The notes under the pieces are model-generated. The model had not been told where the DNA came from. It worked only from the letters and a program-made list of their open reading frames with translations, and did not search any database. From positions 1 to 64,000 of the forward strand of contig CP075494.1 in NCBI GenBank assembly GCA_021613535.1: DNA of 64,000 nt, read 5' to 3'. Positions 21,759 through 61,352 of this stretch are shown piece after piece. How positions within the stretch are numbered: position 1 is the stretch's first letter; every line of letters begins with the position of its first letter. A program made the translations under genes and the position numbers. The DNA is from Adineta vaga (lineage: Eukaryota; Animalia; Rotifera).

Positions 21759-24219
21759 ATCTGAGAGTGGTACTCGTATCGCTATCGATTGCTGTCTTAT
21801 GATGTTACAGAGTGGCCGTTAGTCACTGTACCGTAGTTTTTTTTCAGTTTCGTAATTATCGAATGCGGAAATAATATATGTGAGGAAAGGGAGCTGATAG
21901 GACAACAATTATTAAGAAAATTTGTGTTTCGACTGAGCTGAGGATTGAATTCAGATAAAGTGCGTACGGTGTGTCAAATAATATTTGTTGGCTTTTTTCT
22001 TTGATAGTAAAATGGATGGGCATGTGATTGATTGTTTTCATCTTATAACTCGCTGTAGGACGAACACGGCGGACGGGATTTCTTAGAAACATGGTGATGC
22101 ATTCATTTTTCTAGTATATTGGCCACTATTTACGTTCGAAATAATCATAAATCTGAGGCTCGCACAGTTTGTATTGACGATTGTGTATTGATACTAAAGG
22201 TAGAAAACATACATGGAAACTGCCGTTTATTTTAATGGTCTTAGTTCAAACAGAATCGAGTGTTTCTGCTTTTTGAAGTACATCTTTTAAAAGTAAATGT
22301 CAGCTAAAAAACTGTAAAACCACGGACAATACTTGTCTAACTGTACCTTAGATCGAACCTGGAACTGAATTGGTAGACCGATACCCAGCTAGGCGATTTG
22401 GTCTTGTCGAACCTTTCAGGCTGGTGTAGACAGATTTGATCGGCCTTATTGTCAAAATTTTGGGAATAGACTCTAAAATGATGCATTTTGCTCGTTTTTA
22501 TTGATTTTCACCACGTTAAACTAAAATATCAAAAACGATTTCTTGTTTTCGTACATGTTATATCAACTGCTGGTCTCTTGCAATTATGGAAATCTGCAAC
22601 AAACAAATATTAAAAGGACTAGATTAAAACCTTTACCAAAAAAACGATATTTTTTGCTGATTTTCACTTTATATTTTTATCGAGCAGAATTTTATAATTA
22701 AACTGACTCGATTTTACCAGTCTGATCAAGCATTTCAACCGTCCGTTCCGATTCGATAGAAAAAGCGAGGCCGGCTGGTCTAGTTTGATCCCGTCCAGTC
22801 TGACTATGGGTGTAACTGTTGTATTCAATTCTATCGTGAGAGAAGATCATATCTTTGATCTAATTCAACTCATTCACAAGTTATAAAGGTTGATTTCATA
22901 TCTAACAGATAATCAATAATGAATGTAAAAATGAAACGGTAAGAAAAGTAGCTAGAGTATATTCTATATTTATCTTTTGTAGTATATGTGTAATAATGCA
23001 TCAAAAAAAGTTCCAGAAAAAATCATATTGATCGATTTTGAAAAACTTATTGTTATGTTCTCGTAATGATATCTTCACTAATGCAAAAGTGGATGTTAGT
23101 CAGTATTATATCATTCTAATTCTAAACTTTGTGAGGGATGCCCTAGACGATTACAAAATATATGCCCTGCCGAAGTTGCACTTTTTGCCAAAGCTGGAAC
23201 TTCGACAGCGGGTGTAACTTCGGCACGCCATATATAAATTTAATAAGAACATCAGGTGAATTTGGATACATAAACATTGATCAGAGTTAGAATAGAAAAT
23301 AAAAGGAAATTGGTCAATAGAGAGTTTGGATATAACTTTTCGAGGTATATCGTTCAAAGCATAATATCAATACTTTATCATTTGTCTGAGATACACATGT
23401 CAAATAAAATATATTCGAGAATATTTACTTGTAATTAAGATATTCAATGAACATATATTTGAATAAATAAATGGAACAAAAATTGCAGCTGCAGAATTTT
23501 GTGTCTTTTAATTCATCTAGTCGGCATAAACGGCTGTTCTTCACATAATGTTTCTTATTATTGACGAGTATAAAGCGTTATTAAATAAAGTCGATGCATT
23601 TAATCCAGCAATTACACGTATCTGTTTATATAATTGAAAAAAAGGAAATATTCGTTGGAGCATGACAGAAAAACGAGCGAAAGGAAGCACATGGTTACCG
23701 ATTTTTTCTCTCCTGTATCAAAATGAATATGGTGAAACGATTGCTTCGTACGTAAAAGGAATAGATTAATCAATGCTTATATTCAATTTTTTGATAGATA
23801 TGAATCTTGAAATTGATCAATTTACGATATTCTTCTGAGGAAAATTTAAATAAATTCATTTTTCTACAGATGTTGAGGAACTATATGTTTAAATGAGAAC
23901 AAATTAGATGATATAAATAATTTATAATGCGATCACATAGGAAGAGTAACTTGAGTCTCGAATCTCGTGGCTTCTGCCTGAAATTTAGTTTTATTCAGTA
24001 AAATTCCACAAGATCCGACGACTTATTTGTCTCTTTTAAAATACTTTTCACATACAGTGGTAATAGAAGTTATTATACAATAATAAAAAAGTGCATGAAA
24101 ACAATTGTTTGATACTTATATGTGCTTCAGAAAAAAAAGACAAAAACAACGGAAAACAATCTTTCTGTATCAGGTCTATCGTATAGTGCAGTATTCGTTT
24201 CTAAGACATCATCAGATGA

Positions 24220-30550: not shown

Positions 30551-32215
30551 TTAAAATGACTCATTTGCAGAATTGTTTTTGAAGGAAAAACCTTCATAAC
30601 CATTGCTCTTGATTTCCTCACATTTCTTCCAGTATTCAGGACAACCACCTACATAAGGCATAAAAATTCGTGGTTTTCCAATGATATTTGCCCCAGTATA
30701 CCAGGAATTGCCAGTAGGATACAGAGTTGTATTGGCAACGTCATTAACATGTTTAAACCAACTATCTTCTGCTTCGATTGTAGGCTCAATACTGCCGAAG
30801 TTATGTGTTCGCATATATTCCAGGCATTCTGTGACCCATTTAACATGCTCCTCGATCGAGGTGGCCATGTTGCTTATTTCAGAAGGACTACCAGGGCCGG
30901 TAATGATAAATAGATTAGGAAAATCAGCGACCATAATGCCAAGATAAGTGCGCGGTTCATTCGCCCATTTTTCTCGAAGTGTCTTGCTTTCAGAACCACG
31001 AATATCAATATTAAGCAATGCTCCAGTAATTGCATCAAATCCAATAGCAAGAATGATATCATCTACTTCATAAGTTTTATCTTTAGTTTTAATTCCTAGA
31101 GGTATTATTTCATCAATAGGACCGTTGTAAATATCAACAAGTGTAACATTTTCGCGATTATACGTCTCATAATACGTAGTGTCACAACAAACACGTTTGG
31201 TACCTAAAAAATAATTTTGTGGCAGCAAAGTCTTAGCAACGGTAGGATCTTTGACAATTTCACGAATCTTGGCACAGACAAATTCTGAAGCTGTCTTGTT
31301 TGCTTCCTTACTTTTAAGCAAATCATTAAAATGAAAAAGAAATACAATTCCTCCTTGTTGCCATGCTATCTCATATTTCTGTTGCAACTCTTCTGATGGT
31401 AGACTTAGCGCAGAATATGCTTTAATATCGTTCCAAACGCCACAGCGCATCTGTCGCATTTCACGTCGACGTTGAGCATAATTAGTTTTCCATTCTTTTT
31501 CGTATTCCTTTGTCATAGGTTCATTATTTAGTGGTATACTAAAATTTGCCGTTCGTTGAAATACATAAAGATGAGCAGCCTCTTCAGCGACGACCGGAAT
31601 GCATTGTATAGCTGATGACCCCGTGCCAATGACGGCCACACGATGACCAGAGAAGTTAATATTCTCATGTGGCCATTGACTGACACTATAACACTTGCCC
31701 TTGAAACGGTCCAACCCTTTGATATCAGGAGTTTTTGGAATCGAGAGACAGCCTGTTGCCATAACGCAGAATTTAGCTGAAATTTGATCACCACGGTTCG
31801 TTCGAACTGTCCATTTTGTGGAAGATTCATCAAAGATTGCGCTCATTACACGAGTGTCTAACTGAATGTCTTTCCACAGATCCAATTTATCAGTTACGTA
31901 ATTGAGATAACGCAAGATTTCTGATTGAGATGCATAACGTTCTGACCATTGCCATTCCTGTTGTAGCTCTTCATTGAATGAATACGAATATTGCATACTC
32001 TCAACATCAGATCGTGCTCCGGGATAACGGTTCCAGTACCATGTCCCACCGACTCCACCACCGACCTCAAATACCTTCGCCGAATATCCTCGCTCTCGTA
32101 CTTGATGCAACATGTATAAACCAGCGAATCCAGCTCCAACAATAACAACATCGACTGTACTAATAATATTTCCGTTAGCATCATCTGTGTTCTGTGAATC
32201 TATCTTGGTAGTCAT
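30551..32215 (-). CDS. Type I Baeyer-Villiger monooxygenase (cyclohexanone/phenylacetone monooxygenase-like), intronless
   Basis: 554-aa ORF with Rossmann motifs GAGFAG and GTGSSA, GGTWYWNRYPGARSD, ATGCLS, GTKR, and a variant fingerprint FKGKCYSVSQWP. Confidence 0.93.
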   Translation of the reverse strand: MTTKIDSQNTDDANGNIISTVDVVIVGAGFAGLYMLHQVRERGYSAKVFEVGGGVGGTWYWNRYPGARSDVESMQYSYSFNEELQQEWQWSERYASQSEILRYLNYVTDKLDLWKDIQLDTRVMSAIFDESSTKWTVRTNRGDQISAKFCVMATGCLSIPKTPDIKGLDRFKGKCYSVSQWPHENINFSGHRVAVIGTGSSAIQCIPVVAEEAAHLYVFQRTANFSIPLNNEPMTKEYEKEWKTNYAQRRREMRQMRCGVWNDIKAYSALSLPSEELQQKYEIAWQQGGIVFLFHFNDLLKSKEANKTASEFVCAKIREIVKDPTVAKTLLPQNYFLGTKRVCCDTTYYETYNRENVTLVDIYNGPIDEIIPLGIKTKDKTYEVDDIILAIGFDAITGALLNIDIRGSESKTLREKWANEPRTYLGIMVADFPNLFIITGPGSPSEISNMATSIEEHVKWVTECLEYMRTHNFGSIEPTIEAEDSWFKHVNDVANTTLYPTGNSWYTGANIIGKPRIFMPYVGGCPEYWKKCEEIKSNGYEGFSFKNNSANESF

Positions 32216-34824: not shown

Positions 34825-37800
34825 ATGGAAGAAGCGAAGTCATTAACATTCTTGGAACCTCCTCTTGTCATGACCAATGAGCAATTGCATGACTCTCCAT
34901 CGTTTGATCAACAACGAACTTGGTTCAATGAACAAGATTATCTGGATTGTTGGCTATCAACAACTCATTGCAATATGATATTACCTTTAATAATCAAACA
35001 TCGCACAATGTCTATCGGGCGCATTCATTCATCCTTTAAAACTATTATCAGACAACATAATATTTTTCGAGGAACTATTCAATTCAATGAAGATAAAAGT
35101 CAGCTTGAACAAATAGTTCAGCCTATTACAGATGAAAGCAAATATTTATTTGAAGTGACATCCATTAATAAGTCTCAAAAGGATATCGATACTCTGCTTA
35201 AAGCTGAATTAACCATAAAATTTTCAGAGATTGATAACAGTTTGGTAGTTCGATGTCATCTCATCACAATGCATTTAGATGATACGGAATATTTACAACC
35301 AGGTGATCTGATCATCTTTACCTTTCATCGAATAGTATTTCATTACATGTCTTTTGATCCTTTTCTGAATTCATTCTTGCAGGCCTATAGTGATGAAGAA
35401 TCTTGTGAAACAACAAAGCGTTCTTTTGATTACGTTTTGCAAGAACATGAGCAGATAGACAATTCAAATTCAAAAATAAATCACACAGAACGCTTTTGGT
35501 CAACATTGCTAGAAAGTTATAATTGGAATCAAGCTTGTTTAGATTCCAGTCGTTTTTCAATATTGACAAAGGCATACTCGATCCACAGCAATTCGATTGC
35601 TTTTATTTTGGAAACGAGTATACTTAATGCAATGATACAATTTGCTTCGTTCTACAAGATTTCCATGTTTGAACTGTGTTTAGCATGCTATTTTACTTTC
35701 CTGCATAAACTTACCAATCAACAAAACGATAATTTGATTGTAATCAGTCCAGTAGATAATCAATCTTTCCACAATAGAAAATCAACGATTGACACATTCA
35801 TCAATCTCACACCGTATCAAATCAAAATTGAATCGGAAAATAATTTTGTTCATTTGATGCAGCAAATTCATACTTTAAATATCGATGTATATCAACAGAC
35901 TCAGTTGTCATATAACGACATTGTCAAGAATGGCTCGTCGATTTCGAAAATTCCTTTTTATTTTCAATATAAAACAAACACATCATCGCTTAAACATGAG
36001 TTTATTATTAAAAGAAATACAAAACAAACACTACTGGCTTACTATGTTTATCCAAATTATTCCCACACAAACGATGTGACCCAGAGCGATCTTTCGTTAA
36101 TCATGACTCCTGATTATCAACAACAAACAATAAACTGTATATTAACATGTTCATCCGCTTTGTATGATGAGAAGAAACTGTTTATGATGGTTCACAATTT
36201 TCAACATCTTTTGAAAGAACTATTTTATTCTCACCAAGAAGCCAATAAGTTTAGTCAAGGCTTTCAACCAATTCGAAAGCTAACGTTATTCTCTGACAAT
36301 CAAATTAATGGAATACAAGACACAACTTTCCATCGCCTACCGGAGATCATCGATCAAGGTATGTCCTTAAATGATTATGACGCCAATTACTTTTGTCATT
36401 TTAAAAATACACATGGTCAAAATCATGCGCTAGCGATATGACATTAAACACTTTGAATAAGTGTGTCTTCGTAAAACAAATTCATCTGGAGTTGAGTTGT
36501 TCTATATAACTTGCAAAATCGATACTAGAAAAACTGGCGTTTGCGACGTAACTCAAAAGAAGATATCGCTGCGGTAAAATTCTGTGAAATTGCACAGAAT
36601 ATACCTTAGTTGTTTAGTAGGTTTTCTGATTACGGCCGTTTTCTCAATATATCATACTTATCTCGGGTGAGCGACGTGACAGTATACGAATAAAAGGCAT
36701 TATCCGTGTGAAACTGCTAATTTACTATAGTCTTAGTCTTCTAATTATCAAACAAATATTCGTTCAAAATTGATATAAGAAAAATCTTGAATTTTATTAT
36801 TGAGATTTTAGTACAGGTTCAATGTTGTGTAAACTTAATAAAAAATATTGTTTCAGCAGAAACACAATATATTCTGAATGTTACCGAAAAGAAAACAGCG
36901 AATTAAGTCACATTCTGTTGTTCAGCAATACGCCGTTGCACTTTAGTATTATGTTCATATTAGATCCTATATAACAATGCCATGTATCTTACAAATTGAA
37001 GATGTTGGAGAAGCTTACGAAAATACGAGAGTTGCTAAGTTACTGTCAGATCAAATAGTTGAGAAAAAATCTGTCATCAAATTTTACGAGAATCCACATC
37101 GTGATAAGACTATGAACTAAAAGATACACAAACTTATTCAATATTAACCACTCATCCACACTTCTTTTGAAAAATATGAGGTATACAATATACTTCCCCT
37201 AAACGTTATATCTTTCCGCGTCACTTCAAATATTGTTATTTTTTGTAGCACCCGTTTCCTATGCTCAATCTCGCATTTGGCAAGATGAACAAGTGCGATT
37301 TATGCGAACAAAAGAAGTAGTAGCCATTCACAATATGCCCTTTCTATATTCTATACCATCGGATAACACCATTTCAATCACAAAACTTCGGAAAGCTTTA
37401 GAGCATGTAGTGATGAAACACCCGTCACTTCGGACATCAATCATCTTCGACATCGAGAAAAATGAATTAATACAAAAAATTATGACGCCAAACGGTAAAG
37501 AAAATTTGTTCATATTTGTTGAAAGTAACTTCAAAACAGAAAAAGAACTTAGTACTATTATCAATGATGAGTACAAAAATCCTAATCATTTCAATCTCGC
37601 TAGTGGTTGTGTATTTCGATGTCACATTGCTCGTCAGCATCCGATCTTTTCAGATGACCTACTTTCCAAAGATGATATAGTAATTTTTAATTTTCATCAT
37701 GCCATCTTCGATTTTTATTCCATGGATATATTCAATTTTGATCTAAATCTTGCTATCTATGGTAATCTAACGACATACGATGAACATACAAACCTGCGTT

Positions 37801-40800
37801 ATTTTGACTGTAAGTTTGATATTCTATTCTTTTCTTATCTGGACATCGAATATATTTTTTTCTAGATGCTGTCATTCAGCGGCAAGTGGATATGTCTAAC
37901 GCTAGTTCATTTTGGTTTGACGCGCTTCGTGATTATAAATTTGACCAGTTATTGACATTGCCATTTGACCAGTATCGAGTTACCGATGAATCCCGTTCAT
38001 GTCGTGGAACATCAGTTTCTTTTGATTTTGGTGAAAAAATATCTCAACGTATTACTACCTATGCATCAACTAATAATACGAAAGTGGAATATATTGCACT
38101 TGCTATCTATTATGTCTTGTTATTCAAAATAACAGATAGTCAACAAGATTTGTGTGTGAGTGCAAATGCACATGGTCGCTACAGAGCCGAACTTATGTCT
38201 CTAATTGGAGTGTTTATCAACGTGATTCCTTTGCGATGCCAGATGGATCCCAATAGATCTTTCAATGAACTTGTCGACCATGTGCATAGAACAGGAAGTC
38301 GATACTCAGAACATTCTTATTTTCCTCTTCAACGTATTCTTGAACTACATGTCGCTGCCAATCAATCCGCATTTCTTGACATTTATTTTGGATTCGAATC
38401 TATAGCATTCCCAAATACTTCTGACCATATCAGATTAGGTAATATTTCTATTCAGTCCGCGACTGTTCAATATAATACTGGTACGACTGATATTGTTACT
38501 AAGTTCGATCTTTCAATCAATGTTCAACATGATTTGACAAACAATCAGTTATCATGTGTAATTAATGGATCCTCTGATTTGTTTAGCAAACAAACAGTAT
38601 ACAAGATAGGACAACGATTTATACTAATCATGGAACAATTATTTGAAGATACCTTTAGCCAAACTAAGAAATCAATATACGAGTTATCGTCACTAATGCC
38701 CGATGAAGCAATATTCATTCGATCTATTAAAAACACAGACATTGTCCTTCCTACTTTCAACTGTCTTCAGCATGAGTTTGTATATCAAGCGAAACATCAT
38801 AATCAAAAATTAGCTATTGAACTTGATGAACAATCTCTCACTTACACTGAACTTCTTTATTATGTACAAAAATTAGCTCTTCATCTTATCATCAATCATC
38901 ATCTCACAACTAATGATATTGTTTGTCAATGTATTGAAAGAAGTCTCTCAATGGTAACACTATAATAATAAGAAATAAATTAATAAATAGTTTTTCTGAT
39001 TCTCTAGGTCATTGGAATTCTCTCGATTGAAATAGCTGGTAGTGCTTATTGTCCCTTATCAGCTCGAGATCCTGAACAACGATTAAATATTCTCATTCAT
39101 CAAACTCAAAGTCCTCTTGTTCTTATTCATCATCTAACCCAATATAAATTTAATAATAATAACATTAATACATTAGATATTGATACAATAATTAACAATA
39201 ATCAAATAATCAATGAAGAAGATCTTTATCATCTATCAAATATTATCATTACACCAGAAAGCATTGCTTATGTCATATTTACTAGTGGCTCGACAGGCAT
39301 ACCAAAAGCTGTTAGTTCTAACTTTGATGTTTGTTTTCTTCTATTGTATTCTGTTTATAGGTTCAAGTACGTCATCAGAATTTTATTGAATGTATTCATT
39401 CTCTTGTTCATATTAATACATTTACTGAGATGGATACAATCATACAAATGGCACGTTGTTCATTTGATATTCATATGCAAGATATTGTCGGAACATTAGT
39501 CGTTGGTGGTACATTAGTAATGCTTCATCCAAAAGGAAATATGGATTTTGAATATTTGACTGAAGTACTTAAAACTAAACAAATCACTTTTATACATGCT
39601 GTGCCAACATTAATCTATAGTCTTTTTCAATATATCAAGGAAACCAAAGATTTGCTTGTCATCGAATCATTACGTACACTTTGTGCTAGCGGTAAGTACT
39701 ACCTATACTATGTCTAGAATAGTCATGTAATGTTCTTCGTTTTTCTTAGGTGAAGCTGTATCTACTAAAATGATTAATTTTTTAGCGACTTTTCTGGCGC
39801 GAACGGTTCAAATATGGGATTTGTATGGTCCGGCTGAGACTACACTCATCTCTACCTATCATCTAATAGATCCAACTATTGATAAAACAAGTATTCCAAT
39901 TGGTCGACCTCTTCCTAACTATACATGTTTTGTTCATGATGAATTTTCACAACCAATTTCTATACATCAAGTAGGTGAATTGATTATAGGTGGTGTAGGT
40001 GTATTTGCTGGTTATCTTGGTCGAGATGATTTGACAGCAAATGCATTAGTAAATATTGATGGAGAAATATGCTATAAAACAGGTGATCTTGTTCGATTAA
40101 ATGAAAATGGTTTACTTGATTATCTTGGTCGAAAAGATAATCAAGTAAAGTTGCGTGGACAACGGATTGAACTTAATGAAATTGAACAATGTTTGCTTGA
40201 AACATCGATTACAGCATGTGTTGTTATAAAATGGAAGGATGATTATTTAGTTGCATATGTGCAAAATATTAACACTGATGTAAAATTATTGCGTGAACAT
40301 TGTCTTTGTCGTTTGCCATCGTTTATGGTTCCATCGATGTTCATTGTGCTCGAAGAATTTCCATTAAATGCAAATGGAAAAATAGATCGGAAGCGTCTTC
40401 CTACACCTGACTTTTCATCAGTGTCAAACATTGAAGAAGATCTTGAACATATCGAACCAAAAACTAAGCTTGAAAGACGTGTTCATTCATTATGGTGCAA
40501 GATTCTCGGTTACACTCAAATATCTACGAATACAAGTATCTCCAGCATTGGTGGTCATTCGCTTTTATTGACACAACTTTACCATAGTTATAGAACAAGT
40601 TTTAACATTGGTAGTCAGTTTGCCGGTATTATGGAATTTTTTGAGCATCCTACAATTGCTGATCATGCTCGTCTGATTGAAGAGTCGATAACCAGTCAGG
40701 AGTGTGATATTATATCTGCTCACTTATTGTCAGAAATAGAGACGTTGGAAACGGATTCAAACTTGATCACTGAAAACCAGAAATGCTCGAGATATGAAAA

Positions 40801-43800
40801 CTTTCCTACCACAGAAATCCAACAAGCTTATCTATTTGGACGAAACGAATACGTGGAGCTTGGTCACGTTTCCTGTTTCTCATACGAAGAATATGATTAT
40901 TCATCAAACTTTAATATATTACAGTTCGAACAAGCATTTAACTGTTTAATTGGTCGTCATGAAACACTACGTATCATTTTTCCATGTGCAACCGAACAAA
41001 AAATTCTCAAGGATGTTCCTTATTATAGAATCGTTGTACTCGATTTAAGCAATAATTCATCAATAGATGAGCAACTTCTGAAACGTCGAATACAATTGTC
41101 ACATCAAGTGCGTCCTGTTGATCAATGGCCACTTTTTGATATTCAATTGACTCGATTCATGATTGATGAAGAACACCAGCTTCGTTTACACATCGGCTTT
41201 GATCTCCTTATTCTGGATCTTTGGAGTTTAAAATTGATTTTATCTGAATTAAATGAACTCTATCTCAATATAAATAAGGTTCTAGCATCTTTAGATATCT
41301 CTTATCGGGATTATATTTTAGCCGAACTGAAAATGAAAGAAACAGTTATCTATAGGAGCAATAAAGAATATTGGATGAATCGCTTAACTTTGTTTCCATT
41401 AGGTCCTAATATGCCACTACGATGCTCGCCAACTGAACTGAAAGTACAACGTTTCTGTCGTCTAAAGAAAACGTTAGATCGATATATATGGCAACGTTTG
41501 AAACATCAAATTCACAGACTCAAGTTGTCACCAGCTGGCTTCCTAGCATCAGTCTACTCAATAGTATTATCTAAATGGAGTGAAAACAAACACTTTTCTC
41601 TAAATCTACCTATTTTTAATCGTTCATTAATACATCCGCAAGTCAACGAAATAGCTGGCGATTTCACATCAATACTTCCATTAGAAATTAATCTTGATAA
41701 GTCGGTTGCTTTTGAACAATTTGCTCGTACTGTGCAAAATCAATTGTGGAATGATCTTGAGCATATGCTGTACAATGGAGTATCGTTTATTCGTGAACTA
41801 ATGTGCTTAAATAATTCAAGACAAATTATTTTACCGATTATTTTTACATGTGGAATAGATGTTGATAAATCTAGTTATGAGACAGACTATAACAATATCC
41901 TTTTCGACAAACCACCAGTATACGGTATTACGCAAACTCCTCAAGTTTTTCTTGATAACCAAGTACATGAACATAATGGACACTTGATAATACATTGGGA
42001 TTATGTAGACGATCTGTTTCCGCCAAAAATGGTTAGTGATATGCTAGAGGCATTCATCGGTTTACTTCATAGATTTTCATTGTCTGAAGACATATGGCAC
42101 GAGCCTGTCATTCTTTCAATACCAATTGATCAACACGAAAGACGGCTAGCCTTTAATCAAACAAAGTGGACGCCAGAAGTAGAAAATAAATTACTTCATA
42201 CATTGATAAGCAAGCAAGCCGCACAGGTACTTAATGCTCCGGCTGTTTTCTCTTCCCGTGGAAATCTAACATATGAACAACTAATGAATTATACATATTC
42301 TCTTGCAAATCACTTACGCGAACATGGAGCACAAAATAATCAGTTAATCGCTATTTTTATGGAGAAAGGTTGGGAACAGATTGTTGCATGCTTAGCTGTA
42401 CTGTTCTCGGGTGCTGCATTTTTACCATTAGATATAGACTCTCCCCAAGAACGTCTTCTTACATTGGTGAAAGAAACTGATGTAAAAATTATTCTTACAC
42501 AATCTGATCAAAAATCAATCTTTTTGGATTTGATAGTCATTTCAGTTGATATATTTACATTTGATCTCAATCCAAAGCCATTTCCCATGCCACAGCAATT
42601 ACCAACTGACTTAGCCTACATTATTTTCACATCTGGTTCTACTGGAAAACCAAAAGGTGTCATGATTAGTCATCAAGCAGTCATTAATACTATTCTTGAT
42701 CTCAACGATCGGCTAGAAATTTCAGCTCAAGACAGAATATTTGCATTGTCTCACTTGAATTTTGATTTGTCGGTTTATGATATTTTTGGAACGTTAATTG
42801 CTGGTGGTGCTATTGTCATGTGCGACCAAGAAAGTTACAAAAACCCAAAGCATTGGTATGAGATGATGGTTAAATATCAAGTGACTATTTGGAATAGTGT
42901 TCCGATGTTGATGCAAATGTTAGTCGAGTTTTTAAAACATACTTCTAATGAAAATCAGTTGCGACACATTTTGTTAAGTGGCGATTGGATACCATTGTCT
43001 TTACCAAAATCAATACAAACAATATTTGGTGATCATGTAACAGTGACTAGCTTAGGTGGTGCTACTGAAGGATCAATTTGGTCTATCGCTTATTCCATTC
43101 CAAAGCTATTACCAAATGATTGGAAATCGATTCCTTATGGAATACCATTACGTAATCAAGAGTATTATGTTTACGATATACAATTAAATGATTGTCCTGA
43201 ATGGGTTACTGGTGAGCTTTATATTGGAGGATTAGGACTAGCTGATGGTTATTGGAAAGATAAAATAAAGACAGAATCAAGTTTTATCCTTCATCCACGC
43301 ACGAATCAACGTCTCTACCGAACGGGTGACTACGGTCGTTTCTTGCCAAACGGATATATTGAATTTATTGGACGCACAGATTTTCAAGTGAAATTGCATG
43401 GACATCGTATTGAACTTGGCGAAATCGAATATTGTTTACAGCAATTTTCAAATATTCGCCAGGCAATTGTAAATGTAGACGACAAATCTAAACGTTTAAT
43501 AGCCTATATTACGACAGAAAAACATCATGAAAACAACGATGATTATAACAAAGACAATATTTTTATCACTGATCCTACTCAATGTGATAGTTTTAAGTTG
43601 ATGAAACATAATATTTTACGGCAAGATCTAGTGAAAAAGAATTATTCATTGAATAAGTTAGAGCATACAGACACATTAATCGATACATATTATATTCGGA
43701 AGAGCTACCGACAATTTACTAATGAAATTATCACCGAAGATGATATTGAAAATTTATTAAGAAAATATCAATCTATCAATAACGGTAAAAAAGTCATATG

Positions 43801-46800
43801 TTTGAACTTGAATTCAAACACCCTAAGCCAATTTCTGTCGGTGCTAAGACCAATTACGATTCTTGATAAAACTTCTCCGAAATATCGTTACGCATCAGCA
43901 GGATCACTGTATCCAGTCCAGGTATACATTGAAGTTTTTACAATTATTGATGATATTTTACCGGGTTTTTATTATTATAATCCCGATAATCATAATCTTC
44001 AGTTGATCAGTACATGTACTAATAATGACAACGATCATAATAAAATTCACTTGCACTTAATTGGTAGATCAGCGGCTATCGCTCCAATCTATGGGAAAAA
44101 ACTAGGATCACAATTGTGCGTATTAGAAACTGGATATATGATGGGATTGTTAAAAAATGAAGCATTAAAAATGGGTTGGATATTTTCAAAGATAGAGTAT
44201 GTAGATGTAAATAACCAATTACATTTAAATTTAGACGAACATGATACTCATCATGCTTTTTCAATTCAATTAATTACACAAGATCATTACACTGATAATG
44301 ATGATGAACTTAGCAATTATCCCGAATGTATTGTGTATTTTAAGGCATCTGATCATCAACCAGAACGATGGTTTATTTATGATAGAGCTACTAGCAATCT
44401 CACACCTTTTTTTATAAAGTTATATGAAAAACAAGAAGAACCATTGCTCTTCTTTGAAAACAATGACGAAAATAAAGTTATCTTTAATGATTGTCGTGTT
44501 GCGATATTTTTCATTGGACACTTGGAGCAAGCCATAAGCACGGGCATGATGGCGCATGTTTTAATGGAAATTGGTGTTAAAGTCAACATTGGTATGTGTC
44601 CAGTCAGTAGTCATATCAATTTGCCATCGAAGATCACTAATACAATAAATGATTTTTTGACTCATTCTGACTCTCACAAGGAAAAAATATTATTACATAC
44701 TTTGCTTCTTGGAAAAATAAATCCAGAGCAAAAGTATGAACATAGAAGTTCGGTAATACGATCCGTACCCAATTACAGTCAGACGTTGACAAAATACTTG
44801 AGTACAAAACTTCCAAGTTATATGGTACCATCTTTATTTATTACTGTTTCAAAATTTCCATTGAATGTAAATGGAAAGATTGATCGGAAGGCTCTACAAA
44901 ATACATTTTCATTATCGTATAATAAAGAAAATTATGAACCACCGATTAGTGATTTAGAAAGAACCATTGTTGGTATTTGGCAGAAAGTGCTAAACTATAA
45001 ACAAACTAATCCTATCTCGATTACTGCAGGTTTCTTTAGTCTTGGCGGTTATTCTCTACTTCTCGTTGAACTTTATAATTACTATCAATCAGTATTTGAC
45101 TTTGACACTCAAACATTGACAATTAGATCATTCTTTCAACAGGATACTATAGCCGAACATGCAAAGATGTTGCAAACAACTTCTTCGACTAATATTAATT
45201 TCAACGTTTGGAAGACACTTCATATTATCGAAGGTAGTATAGATTATATAATGGGACTAACACATGAATACTTGAATTTTAGGTAGAGCATCATTTGCAC
45301 AAGAACGTATATATCTTGATGCTCAGATTAGAAATACAAACAATCTAGCGTTGTACAATGAGTTAATAGTATTTCGACTTATAAAAGGTTCATTGTCAAA
45401 AGAACGTCTTGAACGAGCTATTTGTTCGATTTTAAATAAGCATCCTGTGTTACGCACTTCCCTTTTTCTTAGTAATGATGATGGCATGTTAATGCAAAGC
45501 ATCAAGTTTAATTGCCCTGATCCATTTAAAAACGAAAAAGAGAAAACTTTTAAAAATAATGAAGAACTGGATGATATTATTCGTCAAACTACTATCGATC
45601 CTAATCTTTTTGATTTGTCAAATGCTCGAGTTTTTCATTATGAAATTGTTCGTTACGAACCAGCTAATAGTTTCAATGAGGATTATGAACTTATGACCGC
45701 ATCTGATGCACTCATCATTGCCTTTCACCATGCAGCATTTGATCTAGTGTCTAGCCGGGTCTTTCTCGAAGATTTAACTGTTGCGTACAATAGTGATAAG
45801 TTACTGTCGATTGATGAAGATTCATTTCAATATATTGACTATTCCATTCATGAACATCTGATGGATATGACGACATCTCAGATGTTCTGGCGTTCACAAC
45901 TTGAGGGATACAATTGGGAGCGTCCTTTATTATTACCAGCCAATCGATACCACAATTCTACTCATAATCGATCAAGTTTCTCTACAATGATTCATTATTA
46001 TTTCGACGACAATCTTTCCCAGTCATTTCTTGCATATGCTTCCTTGCATGGAGTTACTCCATTTCATCTAGGTATTGCGATCTTTTACGTTTTCCTATTT
46101 AAATTGAACAATGATCAAAACGATTTTTGTGTCACTTGTCTTAATGCTAATCGACATAGGACGGAATTACGAGACCTGATAGGTATGTTCGTTGCTACAC
46201 TTCCTTATCGTATTCAATTTGATCCAAGAGCATCTTTCAATCATCTCATGAAACAAGTGTTCAATCAATCTTTATCCATTTTACAACATTCGCATTATCC
46301 TCTTCAACAAATTCTCGCTAACTCATCTAAACAAGAACCGACCACTAATTTTCTCAAAATTATGTTTGATCTAATCATCTTGTCCCAAAATCTTAGCTTA
46401 TTAACTCTTGATGGAGCGCAACTTGAACAAATGCCATTTCAACAACTCGATATCATAGCTAAGTTCGACATGACATGCAGACTTATATATGATCCATCAG
46501 CTGTATATTCAATTATATCATGTTCTATAATCTGCTCCGAAGATATATATGATCAGATAACAGTGCAGATATTGATGAATCGCTATGTATCTCTTTTTCA
46601 GCAACTATTTGATCTTACATCGGTTGATATCACATCACAGCCAGTTTTTAATCTGTCCATCATCCTCCCAGACGAACTCAATATTATTAACGTATTGAAT
46701 ATCAATCATGATCTTGAAAAACGAACAGATATATTAACAATTAACGAATCTTTTTATCATCAAACTTTTAGATTTTCCCAAAAGCTCGCCATTGAACTCG

Positions 46801-49800
46801 ATGATCAGTCTCTCACTTACACTGAACTTCTTTATTATGTACAAAAATTAGCTCTTCATCTTATCAACAATCATCATCTCATAACTAATGCTATTATTTG
46901 TCAATGTATTGAAAGAAGTCTATCAATGGTAACACTAATAATAAGAAATAAATTAAATAATATTTTTTCTGATTCTCTAGGTCATTGGAATTCTTTCGAT
47001 TGAAATAGCTGGTAGTGCTTATTGTCCCTTGTCAGCTCGAGATCCTGAACAACGATTAAATGTTCTCATTGAACAAACTCAAAGTCCTCTTGTTCTTATT
47101 CATCATCTAACTCAACATAAATTTAATAATAGTCACATAATTACGTTAGATATTGATACAATAATCAATAATAATCAAATAATCAATGCAAAAGATCTTT
47201 ACCATCTATCAAATATTATGATCACATCAGAAAACATTGCTTATGTCATATTCACTAGTGGTTCGACAGGCACACCAAAAGCTGTTAGTTTAAACTTTGA
47301 TGTTTGCTTTCTTCTATTCTATTGATATTCTTCTATTTATAGGTTCAAGTACGTCATCGAAACTTTATCGAATGTATTCATTCTCTCGTTCATATTAATA
47401 CATTTACTGAGATGGACACAATTATACAAATGGCACGTTGTTCATTTGATATCCATATGCAAGATATTGTTGGAACATTGATCGTTGGTGGTACATTAGT
47501 TATGCTTCATCCAAAAGGAAATATGGATTTTGAATATTTGGCTGAAGTACTTAAAACTAAACAAATCACTTTTATGCATGCTGTGCCAACTTTAATCTAC
47601 GGTCTTTTTCAATATATCAAAGAAACCAAACAATTGTTTGTCATCGAATCACTACGTACACTTTGTAGCATTGGTTAGTGTGTACAGTCGAAATTTTTGA
47701 GTAGTGTTATATTTGTTGTTATGATTTGTAGGGGAAGCTCTGACAGTGAAACAAGTTAGTCTATTCATATCACTTATAACGAAGCATTGCCGTATTTGGA
47801 ACTTATATGGTCCTGCTGAAACTACACTAGTGTCTACGTATCATCTAATCGATCCAACTATTGATAAAATGAGTATTCCAATTGGTCGACCTCTTCCCAA
47901 CTACACATGTTTTGTTCATGATGAATTTTCACAGCCAGTTTCTGTACATCAAGTGGGCGAATTGATTATAGGTGGTGTAGGTGTGTTTGCTGGTTATCTT
48001 GGTCGAGATGATTTGACAGCAAATGCATTAGTAAATATTGATGGGAAATTTTTCTATAGAACAGGTGATCTTGTCCGATTGAATGAAAATGGTTTACTTG
48101 ATTATCTTGGTCGAAAAGATAATCAAGTAAAGTTACGTGGACAACGAATTGAACTTAATGAAATTGAACAATGTTTACTTGAAACTTCTATCACAGCATG
48201 TATTGTTATAAAATGGAAGGATGATCATTTAGTTGCATATGTGCAATGTGTTAATAGTGATGTGAAATTATTGCGTGAACATTGTCTTTCTCGTTTGCCA
48301 TCATTTATGGTTCCATCAATGTTCATTGTACTCGAAGAATTCCCATTGAATGCAAATGGAAAAATAGATCGAAAACGTCTTCAGACGCCTGACTGCTTAG
48401 ATGAGACGAATGCGGATAACAGCACTTCTTCTCCTTCAACGCCTTTAGAACATCGTTTGCAATCTATATTTACAGAGGTTCTCAATAAAAAGGTATTGGA
48501 TAAAAATGTTTCGTTGGGAGCTATGGGTGGTACATCTTTAGATGCTATGCGGGTGCTTGTAGTTATCCGGCAGCAAATCTATACAAATGTCGATGCTGCT
48601 CTTCTTTTTGCTAATCCGTCTGTTGGACAACTTGCGAGAGCTATGGAGCCGTTACTCAGTTTAAAAAAAGATCTATCACCTGAAAATGAAACAACTTCGT
48701 TCGAACAGGAGAAGCATTATCGACCAATGCCATCCTTATTTATTGAAGGATTGGGAATTATTTTACTTTTTTTTCAATGGATATATCCACTGTGGATGAT
48801 TCATAGAACTGGATACTACTTCGCCTTGCTACTATTACCCTTATTCTATCTCCTAACCTACATAGTTTGGCAACATTTGTTACTTCGTCCGAAAGGATTT
48901 TGGAAGAGTAAAGATGAACTCTATTCTTGGCGTTATTATCGTATGTGGTTTTTGAATCGTTTATGGTCAATCAATAATTCTTATTGGCTACAATGTTTAA
49001 TGGGTACTCCATTTTATAATGTTTATCTTCGAATGTGTGGCGCAAAAATTGGTTATGGTACGCATATTTATACAACATTAATTGATGCTCCATGGTTGCT
49101 TGAAGTAGGTGATTCAACATTTATCGGTGAAGAAGTGATCCTTTCGAGTCTGTCTTATCAGGATCAAACCTATAAGATTCATTCAATTCATATTGGAGCA
49201 AATTGTTCAATTGGCACTCGTTCAGTTTTATATGACGATACGGTAGTGTATGATCATGTGCATAAAGAGCCTTTATCCAGAATATCTGGACATGTGTCAT
49301 CGCCAAAGGATCACATCTCTATGCATGACAGATCTTTCACTACTGGTCAAACTATATTTCAACTTGTTTGTATTCTCTCTGTTGTGTTTATTCATGGTTT
49401 GCTACTAGTCTTTACTTCATTTGTATATTGTTATTACTTAACTTCGTTATTATTTTTACCTGCGAGTCTTGCTTTATGTTGGTTAATATGGACATCATTA
49501 AGTCTTCTTGTCCTTTTGCTATGCCTAAGATTTGTCGTAGGTGAAGTTAATCCAGGTTGTTGCTCGCTCAACTCCTATTATTACTTACGCAAAGTGTGGT
49601 TACGTCGTTTAGTTATATCATCATTTTATTATTCACTGAATCTTGTGCAATCGTATGATGAATTTGGACCAGTTATTTTACGCTGGCTAGGCGCTCACAT
49701 TGAGGATGATGTTCGACTGGCCGAATTTCAACAGATATTAAATTTTCCATCAAATCTTCTCAAAGCTAAGCGTGGAGCAACGACGTTTGCTGGAGCTACC

Positions 49801-50734
49801 CTTGCTCCATTCGAAGTTACACACGACGGTAAATGTCGTATGGAAGAAATTCATCTTGGTTCGGATGTAAATCTTGGTAATTGGTGTGTCCTGATGCCTG
49901 GAACTCAGCTAACATCGAGAACGATTGTCGGTAGTCTTACACGAGTTACAAGGGAAACAAATAATTCGGATAGTGGTACTATATTACTGGGCATTCCAGC
50001 TAGCATAATGCCATTTATGAAACTTGAACATATATCGAATGTCAGTAGTTGTCCATCGTCCCATTCGTTAATATTTATTACTTTTCTCTCTAGCGTTATT
50101 AATTTTCTCATGAGCAAGTATATATGTATCATTATATACTCAATGATGACTATTCCTATTGCAGTTCTTGTTCATACGAATCTTTTCTGTGCAGTCTATT
50201 ACTGCTCGATTTTCCGTCATAAAAAACGTACATCTTTCACTTACTCAGAAGTTGTTAATCGTACACAACAGTTTCTCCATACGTTGATGGCTGATTTTTT
50301 TACATTCCTTGGTCCATTTCTATCTGAAACACAGTTTCTTGTTTTTCTTTATCGCATTCTTGGCGCCCGAATCGGACGCGATGTCATCGTGTCTGATATC
50401 AGCTGTCTTACTGATCCTCATCTAGTGACTATTGGTGATCATGTTCGACTAAACCGAAGAGCTTACATTCAGGTAATAGACAAATCTTTTCTAATTCCAT
50501 TTATGTTATCTTTACGCTTTTTTTCTTAAGTGTCACACATTTGAACAGCGTCTATTCAAATTAGCACCTGTTACTGTGGGTTCTTCGAGTGTACTTATGA
50601 GTAATACTTTGGTATTATCTGGCGCAAGACTCTTAGGAAGAAACCGTATTTCAGCGTGCACACTTGTTATGAAAGACGATCAATTGCTAGATGACACAAC
50701 TTGGTCTGGTGTACCAGCACAACTTGTAATATAA
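34825..50734 (+). CDS. Trimodular NRPS, ~4,841 aa: C*-C-A-T-Cy-A(Ox)-T-C-A-T-Pls-like terminal membrane domain
   Basis: Exons: 34825-36358, 37249-37809, 37866-38953, 39008-39310, 39361-39691, 39750-45233, 45283-46928, 46981-47283, 47343-47673, 47732-50472, 50531-50734. All introns are GT-AG and the exons total 14,526 nt in one frame. Motifs: three A domains (FTSGSTG.PK, TGD, NGKIDR), three T domains (GGHS, GGYS, GGTS), and C cores HHAIFD and HHAAFD. Confidence 0.9.
40800..45180 (+). other. Cy-A(Cys)-Ox-T thiazole-forming module within NRPS exon 6
   Basis: Cy motifs FPTTEIQQAY, DLLILD and TPQVFLDNQV. A-domain code read manually as DLYNLSLIWK. Oxidase insert RKSYRQF...YASAGSLYPVQVY at ~43560-44750. 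Confidence 0.88.
48720..50734 (+). other. Epsilon-poly-L-lysine synthetase (Pls/PosA)-like terminal domain
   Basis: Three TM-plus-hexapeptide-repeat units (GAKIGYGTHI, GAHIEDDVRL, GARIGRDVIV) and the C-terminal QCHTFEQRLFK...WSGVPA motif. No thioesterase or reductase domain follows. Confidence 0.82.
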
Positions 50735-58767: not shown

Positions 58768-58922
58768 GTGAGGGTGTGAGTGTGGGTGTGGGTGGGTGGG
58801 GTGGGTGTAAGTGAAGGAAATATTCCCACACCCACACCCCCACACCCACAGCCACACACACCACCCACACCCACCCACACCACCCACACCCACAGCCACA
58901 GCCACAGCCACACCCGCCACCT
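58768..58922. repeat. Head-to-head degenerate telomere-like repeats (TGTGGG)n / (CCCACA)n
   Basis: G-rich tract at 58768-58813, a short spacer aaggaaatatt, then a C-rich tract at 58825-58922. Confidence 0.8.
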
Positions 58923-61352
58923 TCTCCCTTTTCGTTTGTATGATCTAGCTGAGCGTTTTTCATGACGTAGTCGATCACTATGATGAAAAGAAAAGGTGCT
59001 AAGATGTCTCCTTGTAGAACAGCAGTCGTCACATCGAATTCTTCTGAGACGTTGCTGTCTACGAGAACCATGCTTTTAGAATTATGATATATGGCTTTGA
59101 TTGCGTTTACTATTTTGATAGGTATTCCATAGTGTCTTAAGATGTTGAACATTGTTTTTCTGTTAATTGAGTCAAAAGCTTTTTTGAAGTCGACGAATGT
59201 TATGAAAATTGGAAGTTGTTTGTCAATTGCGCTTTCTAGGATCCTACGAATGACATGAATCTGGTCAATACAACTTCGTCCCCTCCTGAAACCTGCCTGA
59301 TTTATTCTAAGAATCGATTCTAGTGGTTCTCGTATTCTATTTAACAGGATTCTGTTGTAGGTCTTAGCTGCGATTCACATAAGACTAATGGCTCTGTAGT
59401 TCGTCGTAAGCGTTTTATCACCTTTTTTTGGTATTGGTATTATGATGTTGGTGTTGAATTGTCTTGGTGTCTGTTGATTTTCATAGATCTCGTTGCATAT
59501 ATTGCATAATTGATTTAGTATCCATTTGCCGCCATACTTGAGTACTTCAGGTGTTATTGCGTTGTCCAGTCCAGGTGATTTTCCATCTTTTAGTTGTTTG
59601 ACTGCTTGTTCCACTTCGTCAAGTGTGAAAGGACCTTGATTGATTAGTAGGTCTTCAAGAGCTGGTGAAATTGCTTGGCTATCTTGTGAGTTGTTTGATT
59701 CTACGTTGAGTAAGTCTTTGAAATAAGTCTTCCATTCGTTCATGAGTTCGTCTGTTGAGTTGATTTTGGTTCCATCTGCTCTTTTGATTTTTGATGCGTT
59801 GCTGTATCTGTGTTTGCCACTGATTTCGTCGACCAAGGACCATGTTGTTCTTAGTTGATTTGATGCAGCTGCTTGTTTGAGTTGTTCAAGTTTGTCTTCT
59901 AAAAAATTAATTTTGTCATTGCTATAAGATGTATCGAGCTGTTTATTGAGTGTGTGCGCCAATGATCTTTTTCTCTGCGCTTGGATTGTGTCTGAATTTG
60001 GTTTTAGCTGCATTTCGTTGTTTTAGGATGTTGAGTGTGTCAATGGTAACCCAATTTCTCCTCTTTTTCCGTGTCGATTTCCCTACCAACTTTGTTGTTG
60101 TTTCTTGTATACATTGCACAAAATTGTCGTATTTTGCTTGTATGTCGTTGTCGGGGTTGCTGTTGTCTAAAATTTCATAACGAGTTTGAACTTCTATATT
60201 GAATTGTGATTGTAGTTTGCAGCTAGTTTTGAGTTTGTTTCAGTCGTACTTGATCCTTTTGCTTTTGATATCTTTCGGTGCTCGAAGGCTGATTGATAGC
60301 TTGGCGCTAACAATACGATGTTAGGAATTGAATTCTACTGTGTTGTAAGCGCGAGCGTTTTGAATTGAATTCAACCATTTTCCATTTATGAGAATATGAT
60401 TCAGTTGAGCTTTGGATTTGCCATTTGGGTGTAACCAGGTCCATAATCTTGATTGTGGTTGTGGAAAGCGTGTCTGTGTTGAGCGCATGTTACAGGCTTC
60501 GCAGTAGTTGACAAGTCTGTTGCCGTTGTCGTCAGTTGAGTGATGATATGTGTGTTTGCCAATTGCTCGTGGATTTGTTGTGTGACTGTCGGATCCCAAT
60601 CTTGCGTTAAGATCGCCAGCAAGTATCAGGACATTGTGTAGTGGAACGTCATAAGTACATCTTTGCAGATCATCGTAGAAGGTATCTTTTTCTACATCAC
60701 TTTTGTCTTCAGTAGGTGCGTAGACGATGATGATGGTTATTGTTGGGTTGCCTTTAAAGTGTGCCACCATGATGCGATCAGATATTTTTTCTGAAGAGTC
60801 GAAGAATGCTGACATTCTAGGATTTATCAGTAGTCCGACGCCTCCATGTTCTTCTGGTGTTGCTGAGCAGTATTCGAAGCGCCATGTTTCGTCGTTCAGT
60901 GTTTGATAAGTTGTACTTGTTTGTTCTGATGTTTGCCAGCGATGTTCTTGAATTGCTACCAGATCGATGTTGTTTTGGTTGCATCCATATACAAGTTGGT
61001 GCAGTTTTTCAGTTTGCTTGAGACTGCAAACGTTGTAGGTGGATATTGTGATGGTCTTGTGAAGAATTTTTATGTTTTTTGTGTTTTTATTTTTTGAACG
61101 ACTCGCCGCTGCTGTATCAAAGGCAGGTAGCTGTCTTATCATAGGCTTGAATTCTTGCAGAATCTTTGCTTGCTGACGGCGAGACGAGAGACTGTTGCCC
61201 GGCATGGGTTCTTCAATTGTTGTTTTCGGAGTCATTGTGAAGCACGCTTCAAATGACTAGCCCTGAAGCGCTTACCAGAGCCCATCTTAGCCGCCGAGAA
61301 CGGCATCTCCATCCGACACTGCGAGGAAGTGAAGGGTTGGGTTTTGCCGGAC
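58921..61352 (-). mobile_element. Non-LTR retrotransposon (RTE-like, APE-RT), inactive and 3'-truncated
   Basis: APE motifs TYNV, IQEHRW, YAPT and GDLNARLG. RT motifs KSPGLD, IPKKGD, NYRAISL, QAGFR, DFKKAFDS and LQGDILAPFLF. In-frame stops at 60321, ~60240 and 59375. The element ends before YADD. Confidence 0.9.
61281..61352 (-). ncRNA. HDV-like self-cleaving ribozyme in the retrotransposon 5' UTR
   Basis: Minus strand parses as P1 GUCCGGC/GUCGGAU (G1-U wobble), P2 CCCUUC/GAUGGG, P3 ACU/AGU with L3 UCCUCGC, GG for P1.1, P4 GCCG-UUCU-CGGC, and J4/2 GGCUAA containing the catalytic C. Confidence 0.82.

Follow-up and report, generated by a model that had tools for sequence, protein, structure and literature searches.

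The window analysed here is the first 64,000 nucleotides (C5:1-64000) of the chromosome-scale contig CP075494.1 of the bdelloid rotifer Adineta vaga (assembly GCA_021613535.1; 6 contigs, 100.8 Mb). It contains a nonribosomal peptide synthetase (NRPS) gene in which an intron-free block of bacterial type, predicted to form a thiazole ring, stands between intron-bearing modules of rotifer type. The locus is subtelomeric. GC content is about 33% across the window, and the NRPS region was no outlier in the composition scan. Stop-to-stop segments scanned with Pfam and NCBIfam profiles revealed a colinear NRPS at about 34.8–50.7 kb on the + strand, to which all gene parts below refer. The parts probably belong to one spliced multi-module gene with the order (C0)-C1-A1-T1-Cy-A2(Cys)-Ox-T2-C3-A3-T3-Pls-like terminus, in which C denotes condensation, A adenylation, T carrier, Cy heterocyclisation, and Ox oxidase domains.

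Introns were picked as GT-AG pairs that preserved the reading frame and the protein alignment, and searches and alignments of A1 and A3 used the separate exons, not a joined spliced model. The predicted splicing is based on GT-AG ends, frame continuity, and exon ends that are conserved in Rotaria and across more than 20 paralogous cassettes. The probable first coding exon (34825..36358) carries C0, a condensation-like domain without HHxxxD (Pfam Condensation, E 1e-24), and is followed by a probable phase-1 intron of 890 bp (36359..37248; GTATGT donor, TTTTTGTAG acceptor). This splice was placed by parallel with the gene models P0014, P0045, P0010, P0005, and P0011, and the joined reading (...LPEIIDQ-A-PVSYAQSRIW) parallels the orthologous models. 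If C0 and C1 are joined, which is probable from the A. ricciae and A. steineri models, they would make a tandem C-C start; a C3-type domain followed by a C1-type domain recurs between modules in paralogues. The next exon (37249..37809) holds the N-terminal part of C1 with HHAIFD, and a 56-bp intron (37810..37865, GTAAGT...CTAG, with matching exon ends in paralogues) separates it from the exon with the C-terminal part of C1 and the start of A1 (37866..38953, A1 from ~38804). A1 continues through intron 1 (38954..39007, 54 bp, ~92% identical to A3 intron 1), exon 2 (39008..39310, AMP-binding profile positions 61-181, A3 core motif TSGSTGIPKA), intron 2 (39311..39360, 50 bp), exon 3 (39361..39691, profile positions 180-293, FDIHMQD, one of ~100 such exons in the genome), and intron 3 (39692..39749, 58 bp).

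An open frame of 1851 codons (39731-45283) then follows, for which the best GT-AG model gives a single exon of 5,484 bp (39750..45233). A frame of 5.5 kb in DNA with 33% GC is not due to chance. The exon encodes A1 exon 4 (39750..40412; A5–A10 motifs YGPAE, YKTGD, GRKDNQVKLRGQRIELNE, and NGKIDR; placed in the rotifer A1-type clade), T1 (40469..40750, from the domain scan, with GGHSL at 40550-40564), Cy, A2 with Ox embedded in it, and T2. A phase-1 intron of 49 bp (45234..45282) leads to the exon with C3 (HHAAFD) and the start of A3 (45283..46928, A3 from ~46779). C3 was also considered as an epimerisation domain, which was ruled out, its best solved relatives being ordinary C domains and HHAAFD being kept. 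A3 consists further of intron 1 (46929..46980, 52 bp), exon 2 (46981..47283), intron 2 (47284..47342), exon 3 (47343..47673), and intron 3 (47674..47731). The breaks in A1 and A3 fall at the same points of the Pfam AMP-binding profile (~61, 180, and 293), with no profile columns lost, and all six introns are GT-AG and 50-59 bp long. The preliminary description of this DNA had placed the thiazole module within one 5,484-bp exon and three introns in each flanking A domain, as found here. The last modelled exon (47732..50526) comprises A3 exon 4, T3, and a Pls/PosA-like hexapeptide terminal domain (TIGR02353, E 7e-39, 134 bits against a curated cut-off of 423, and a Hexapep match). The coding sequence probably runs on to ~50731 past one further short intron.

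Module 2 opens with the Cy domain (40802..42160; assigned from its motif, solved Cy relatives, and the tree), where DLLILDLWS (41201-41227) of the DxxxxD type replaces HHxxxDG and D139 does not vary when the domain is aligned with bacterial Cy modules. The A2 core (42161..43423, motifs A1–A8, Cys-type pocket DLYNLSLIW) shows TSGSTGKPKG, FDLSVYD, WNSVP, LLSGDWI, SLGGATEGSIWS, YRTGD, and GRTDFQVKLHGHRIELGE in order. By motif anchoring, its pocket reads D-L-Y-N-L-S-L-I-W-K, at positions that we take to correspond to the PheA numbering. The cysteine code DLYNLSLIWK given earlier is thus present, and so is the motif SLGGATEGSIWS that had marked A2 as a separate sequence type. In addition, A2 groups outside the rotifer A1-type clade, within a clade formed by the A domains of bacterial Cy modules, and it is predicted to be cysteine-specific. 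An insertion of ~460 residues (43424..44809) between A8 (43370-43423) and A9 (44810-44830) contains the Ox motifs KYRYASAGSLYPVQ, GFYYYNP, and AIAPIYG. Its profile scores stay under the curated cut-offs because just the N-terminal part matches (TIGR03605 SagB-type dehydrogenase, E 1.7e-12, 47 bits, cut-off 78; Pfam Nitroreductase, E 7e-4, 20.3 bits, cut-off 23.5). The region aligns with bacterial NRPS Ox regions annotated as PF00881, and the domain is assigned as a predicted oxidase dependent on flavin mononucleotide (nitroreductase/SagB-like). The remaining A2 motifs, A9–A10 (44810..44890, LPSYMVP...NGKIDRK, with the Lys517 equivalent), precede the carrier domain T2 (44960..45233; PP-binding match, GGYSL at 45044-45058), which is of rotifer T type by T comparison. 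The solved proteins closest to the module are BmdB (7ly7, Cy-A-T, 626 bits), PchE-type synthetases, the Cy domain of EpoB (5t7z), and the Cy domain of HMWP2.

Judging from these motifs, module 2 is a complete thiazole-forming block that would convert cysteine to a thiazole ring. A2 would load cysteine onto T2, Cy would condense it with the residue bound to T1 and cyclodehydrate the product to a thiazoline, Ox would oxidise the thiazoline to a thiazole, and C3 would hand the product on to module 3. The same domain order, with Ox between A8 and A9, is known from EpoB/MtaD-type modules (Cy-A-Ox with a peptidyl carrier protein; the BlmIII type is a related arrangement), and the Cy DxxxxD motif, the cysteine pocket DLYNLSLIWK, and the Ox motifs KYxYxSxGxxYPVQ, GxYYYxP, and IxPxYG are common to both. 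Unlike those, the window module lies in a spliced gene of an animal genome, is 38-53% identical to any bacterial module, has a rotifer-type carrier, and is neighboured by rotifer-specific C/A cassettes and a Pls-like terminus instead of polyketide synthase (PKS) modules. Variants of the block occur in other proteins (P0039, P0026, P0049, P0060; environmental or bdelloid sequences) as Cy-A-T-Pls and Cy-A-Ox-T-Pls, in both of which it stands directly before the Pls-like terminus. Copies lacking Ox also exist, and these would halt at the thiazoline. On the opposite strand, divergent from the NRPS, lies an intronless open reading frame (ORF) of 554 codons (30551-32215). Its product is a flavin-dependent monooxygenase (Pfam Pyr_redox_3, FMO-like, Lys/Orn oxygenase-like) that may serve the cluster as a tailoring enzyme.

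At least seven Cy-A-Ox copies, 55-61% identical to the window copy, were found in the A. vaga genome, and they lie in open frames of 1,864-3,293 codons, except one frame-broken copy at C5:16.91 Mb. The latter (C5:16907488-16910642, L007/L009) matches the block from the A domain on, with no Cy match and a frame break at 16909932, and is possibly a decaying copy near the other chromosome end. Two Cy-A-Ox units stand in tandem in one open frame of 3,293 codons on the minus strand at C1:11358-19979 (L002/L005/L012). This pair was considered as an ancestral, bacterial-like state, which was ruled out, since the two copies are sisters and thus a local duplication; the A domain upstream of the tandem is atypical, with ~1.1 kb between its exon-2-like and exon-4-like parts. 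Exon-by-exon tblastn recovered the layout C (one intron), A (three introns), T-Cy-A-Ox-T, intron, C at C1:16.83 Mb, C1:17.96 Mb, C5:10.19 Mb, and C1:1-30 kb. Proteins of A. steineri (P0004), A. ricciae (P0014), and Rotaria (P0111) have a matching architecture. The C5 ~10.19 Mb paralogue is of the same family and layout, and the window copy differs from it in having A3-T3-Pls after C3, a converted A1/A3 pair (see below), and Rotaria sequences as its nearest relatives. In a contig of Rotaria sp. Silwood2 (L102), A exon 4, T, Cy, A, Ox, and T follow each other in one frame, the T2/C3 intron is conserved (HISEG|gtaaga...ttcag|), and the downstream A domain has the same short introns. Across the copies, one and the same exon holds the block and the final coding part of an A1-type A domain, and an intron comes after T2. 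In the same Rotaria contig (9047-13177), ~4.1 kb separate the first and second A exons after C3, where A. vaga has a 52-bp intron; this gap possibly represents inserted sequence or a very long intron.

In a tree of 116 Cy-A blocks (quick search under LG+G4), the 33 rotifer sequences cluster together as one clade (SH-aLRT 100), nested among bacterial Cy-A(Cys) sequences. The window copy groups with Rotaria copies and not with its A. vaga paralogues, so the paralogue groups and the fusion are older than the split between Adineta and Rotaria. Querying with Cy alone brought up too few short proteins for a reading on early-branching bdelloids. The GC content at third codon positions (GC3) is 0.263 in the block and 0.266 in the flanks, and relative synonymous codon use correlates at r = 0.97. 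The lack of introns is an old trait of the whole rotifer gene family as judged from these sequences, not a sign of fresh insertion. The module had earlier been described as more recently acquired, and this does not stand. A recent insertion of a bacterial module into this particular resident gene would agree with the intron-free state and with the resemblance of Cy, A, and Ox to bacterial domains. However, the fusion is also present at four or more other A. vaga loci (55-68% protein identity), in A. steineri, in A. ricciae, and in Rotaria, the window copy is nearer to Rotaria than to the A. vaga paralogues, its composition and codon usage are fully host-like, and the best bacterial identity is just 38-53%. 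Such an insertion is very improbable and is refuted by the paralogues and the Rotaria orthologue. Odd composition, a lack of orthologues in related species, and a close donor, which would mark a recent transfer, were not found for the block. The traits of the bdelloid NRPS radiation were found instead: relatives in Adineta, Rotaria, and Didymodactylos and then in bacteria, a subtelomeric position, introns, and a GC3 of 0.26.

Bacterial contamination or a chimeric assembly, for which only the bacterial affinity of the domains speaks, has a negligible probability. The block shares its reading frame and its exon with A1 exon 4 and T1, both of rotifer type, has 34% GC and host codon usage, and recurs in other assemblies and species. 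Independent DNA contigs from 2013 are colinear across 38900-41590. By these observations an artefact is refuted.

The borders of the block were narrowed by its carrier domain. T2 is 44-47% identical to T domains of cassettes without Cy (L110, L122), 38% to T1, and at most 39% to the bacterial T domains compared. Its tail, FFQQDTIAEHA...W..LHI.EG, matches resident T tails up to the shared intron, and the pattern W..LH..G|intron|.ASxAQERIF is common to T2 and the A-T/C junctions without Cy; the same T2/C3 intron is kept in paralogues and in Rotaria. By sequence comparison, T2 belongs to the rotifer T radiation, that is, it is of host type. The part of distinct ancestry is therefore Cy-A(Cys)-Ox only, standing between two host-type carriers. 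The preliminary description of a bacterial Cy-A(Cys)-Ox-T module accordingly applies to Cy-A-Ox, which is of bacterial type, and does not extend to T2.

The flanking A domains have a history of their own. A1 (38808-40388) and A3 (46779-48372) are about 93% identical at the DNA level, 92-97% in the sliding profile, all three introns included (88% over 1625 bp by blastn). The tract is exactly the A domain, with sharp ends at the C-A and A-T linkers, and no DNA-level alignment was obtained between C1 and C3 or between T1 and T3. In the Rotaria contig, the two corresponding A domains are unlike each other, from which it follows that the likeness in A. vaga is a later gene conversion and not a new duplication. 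On this comparison A1 and A3 are a gene-converted pair, so the two intron triplets are one set and not independent evidence. The contrast drawn earlier between an intron-free module and three plus three flanking introns is reduced to one shared intron set. Inside the tract, an island of ~150 bp (39669-39820 versus 47651-47800) has only 40-60% identity. It runs from the last part of exon 3 through intron 3 into the first part of exon 4, including the pocket-lining residues ~299-322, and the predicted pockets of A1 and A3 (DIQHCSLLIK and DIQHCILLVK) differ at 2 of 10 positions. The island looks like a homogenisation of the scaffold that spared the specificity segment, or like a second short swap.

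Cassettes of the A1 type are widespread. A1 exon 3 gave 104 matches in the whole genome, most with 35-57% identity and most in open frames of 111-150 codons, with query residues 1-2 to 111 covered; filling such frames, they are bounded by the same two introns. About 14 weaker relatives lie in long open frames. The surveyed cassettes agree in the ends of C1b and of A exons 2, 3, and 4. Their intron gaps measure 50-63 nt, apart from three longer ones, and the A domain continues with T-C (most), T-Pls, or T-Cy. The paralogues without the module that had been proposed as a check are thus abundant, as C-A-T-C and C-A-T-Pls cassettes. Every C after a T, with a Cy block between or not, has the same phase-1 intron 3-4 residues before SxAQxR, C1 included. 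The best 120 relatives of the A1/A3-T-Pls part in a word search were only bdelloid or environmental sequences, and several of the most distant ones start exactly at the exon-4 border, which indicates that they also come from intron-bearing genomes. GC3 is 0.15-0.23 in the A1-type exons (39008-40412, 46981-48399) and 0.25-0.32 in the rest, including the Cy block, C1, C3, and Pls; the compositional outlier is the A cassette, not the thiazole block.

The exon-4 tree (138 rows) unites every rotifer A1-type sequence in one clade (98). The 15 A1-type domains found before a Cy are interspersed with those found before Pls or C, and forcing these 15 to be monophyletic cost 579 log-likelihood units (approximately unbiased test, p 2e-62); the group was named after inspection of the tree, and the margin is very large. 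The polyphyly of these A domains, the monophyly of the Cy-A blocks, and the A1/A3 tract together show that whole A domains were replaced repeatedly along with their introns. In bacteria, NRPS diversity is driven by recombination of A domains and their sub-domains. The rotifer tract is similar in covering exactly one A domain from the C-A to the A-T linker with a divergent pocket island, and in the polyphyly of the A domains before monophyletic Cy-A blocks. Unlike in bacteria, the exchanged rotifer cassette carries three spliceosomal introns that mark its history.

Taken together, these observations support the gene as a mosaic of two module lineages with different histories, an intron-bearing lineage of A1-type C, A, and T domains, found here in rotifers only, and an intron-free, bacterial-type Cy-A(Cys)-Ox lineage. 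The preliminary description had proposed that the module was acquired separately and recombined into a resident NRPS; its two lineages of differing history stand, and the choice between one donor and a separate transfer is not decided by the trees. In the reading that we prefer, each of the two lineages would have a single origin within bdelloids, and they would make up an old mosaic gene. The three A introns and the phase-1 intron before C would predate the radiation of the A1-type family and would have been copied along with the cassette by duplication and gene conversion, and the Cy-A(Cys)-Ox block would never have gained an intron. The block would have been joined once, between a host T and a host-type T, after the cassette introns arose and before the Adineta/Rotaria split, and the upstream A domains would have been swapped repeatedly afterwards. 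Its most likely source would be a second bacterial acquisition recombined into the resident scaffold. From the intron distribution and the asymmetry in divergence, we consider a separate, later acquisition from bacteria followed by one early in-frame recombination to have slightly better than even chances. The narrower statement, in which bacteria supplied the block independently in a second acquisition and in-frame recombination placed it between host-type carriers of an older, intron-bearing scaffold, is held more tentatively, at a little below even.

The intron distribution was evaluated under uniform gain. About six independent intron positions in ~11.6 kb of unique coding sequence, against none in the 4.8 kb of the block, gave P ~0.04, and about five old independent positions in the ~3.2 kb C-A cassette, against none in ~4.5 kb of block, gave P ~0.01-0.03. 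With copies discounted, the absence of introns from the block is only modestly unusual. The block could instead have once borne introns and been cleared of them at once by recombination with a processed copy, reverse-transcribed from part of the transcript. Such recombination is a known route by which eukaryotic genes lose adjacent introns, and the right-hand edge of the block coincides with an exon edge. This explanation is improbable, given that no intron was seen inside the block in any copy from any species, that 4.5 kb in mid-gene would have been cleared while A1 intron 3 (1 kb upstream) and the T2/C3 intron were spared, and that the left edge of the intron-free stretch lies inside A1 and not at the block border.

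The divergence from bacterial sequences is also unequal. Nearest bacterial identities are 38-40% for Cy and 49-53% for A2, against 25-27% for C3/C1 and 31-47% for the A1 exons, an asymmetry that may point toward an older resident scaffold. When C3 was compared with 1.84 billion representatives, rotifer proteins ranked first and giant NRPSs of Bacteroidota next (Chitinophaga fulva, Cytophagales, Flavobacteriaceae; 25-27% per domain), the rank of the latter being inflated by scores summed over many C domains. The nearest relatives of Cy-A outside rotifers are in Desulfobacterota, Bacillota, and Cyanobacteria, and those of C3 in Bacteroidota. Open frames of up to 7,164 codons exist in other NRPS lineages of the genome, and such long intron-free frames suggest several acquisitions of differing intron state.

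The same facts were weighed against a single acquisition, in which the bdelloid ancestor took up one bacterial gene with the architecture C-A-T-Cy-A-Ox-T-C-A..., only the C and A parts of this gene acquired introns, whether by chance or through a local propensity of the sequence, and the A (C, T) cassettes later multiplied into other genes while Cy-A-Ox stayed intron-free. C-A-T-Cy-A-Ox architectures do exist in bacteria (Pedosphaera, L025; Kitasatospora, L027), the left and right partners do not vary among the rotifer Cy blocks seen, and T1 and T2 are alike and of one type. Against this, the four to five old intron positions all lie in the ~3.2 kb of the cassette, and the flanks of the closest bacterial Cy-A-Ox loci are no nearer to C1, C3, or A1 than random NRPS domains, the C domains of the Pedosphaera and Kitasatospora loci being 22-26% identical to C3/C1 and the A domains at most 40% identical to A1 exon 4. 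None of the 80 bacterial loci from the block-profile search combined the joint architecture with close flanking domains. The nearest relatives of C3 and Cy-A belong to different bacterial groups, and the A1-type radiation is far larger and deeper than the Cy radiation. A single acquisition is thus judged unlikely, although it is the strongest of the alternatives considered.

Several points weigh against the preferred separate acquisition. The case from the intron distribution is statistically weak (P ~0.01-0.04) and presupposes uniform gain, and the divergence asymmetry may reflect constraint and not age, C domains being in general far less conserved than Cy and cysteine-type A domains. No close donor was found for the block or for the flanks by the block-profile search and the C3 scan, and there is no direct sign of two transfers. 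Per-domain trees gave the grouping that the preliminary description had predicted (Cy-A with bacterial thiazole modules, A1-type domains in a rotifer clade), but they are undiagnostic of separate transfer because Cy, cysteine-type A, and Ox domains cluster by functional subtype, even within a single bacterial gene. The rotifer Cy copy that branches deepest (P0111) already shows the complete layout of A1-type...Cy-A-Ox...C-A, and some of the A1 domains before Cy branch deep in the A1-type clade, both of which also fit a single acquisition of a ready-made architecture. Composition likewise fails to separate the block from C1, C3, and Pls, whose GC3 and codon usage are identical to its own. The cassette survey covered 20 A1-type loci of 80 planned, together with paralogue regions and, in the tree, database proteins, and the A-domain tree used exon 4 only (~220 columns, quick search under LG+G4). 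Reads covering the NRPS consisted of DNA contigs that are colinear through the introns and a single 155-nt contig from a presumed RNA run, with no splice support for this copy. Two parts of the gene are models only, its start at C0 and the final short intron near 50.5 kb.

A literature search for thiazole-forming NRPSs of rotifers returned nothing relevant. About 40 subtelomeric, horizontally acquired NRPS/PKS clusters, a large rotifer-specific clade of C domains, and induction by a fungal pathogen have been reported for this assembly (Nowell et al. 2024, PMC11258130), and 69 NRPSs have been counted in A. vaga (Nonribosomal Peptide Synthetases in Animals, 2023, PMC10531068). The window locus shares with these clusters the organism group, the subtelomeric site, the rotifer C clade, and divergent copies across species. 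Term searches in both main texts gave no mention of heterocyclisation, thiazole, or oxidase domains and no intron maps separating modules.

Two further features of the window lie outside the NRPS. A 2-kb stretch at 20001-22000 has a GC content of 0.53 and a strong negative GC skew (the rest of the window is 30-37% GC), and contains no ORF of 80 or more codons and no Rfam match. On the minus strand, an ORF at 60321-61235 with an endonuclease/exonuclease/phosphatase domain, probably part of a retroelement, lies near telomere-repeat scars (58768-58930).

As no recent transfer was shown, the locus says little on the current rate of gene uptake. Its meaning lies in the genes themselves, which include complete predicted thiazole-forming modules in an animal, a chemistry typical of bacterial antibiotics and cytotoxins. 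The NRPS family is built of exchangeable cassettes, and in this gene one A domain was copied with its introns around a divergent island at the specificity pocket. Intron maps tell apart cassette lineages of differing history within one gene, and the family is a natural data set on the points at which NRPS modules tolerate being cut and rejoined without loss of function. If the second acquisition is true, spliceosomal introns would serve as inherited barcodes of module ancestry, tracing how bacterial assembly lines were rebuilt in an animal. The animal would then make thiazole-containing peptides from its own nuclear genes, and the gene described here is a concrete candidate for finding such an animal-made thiazole peptide.

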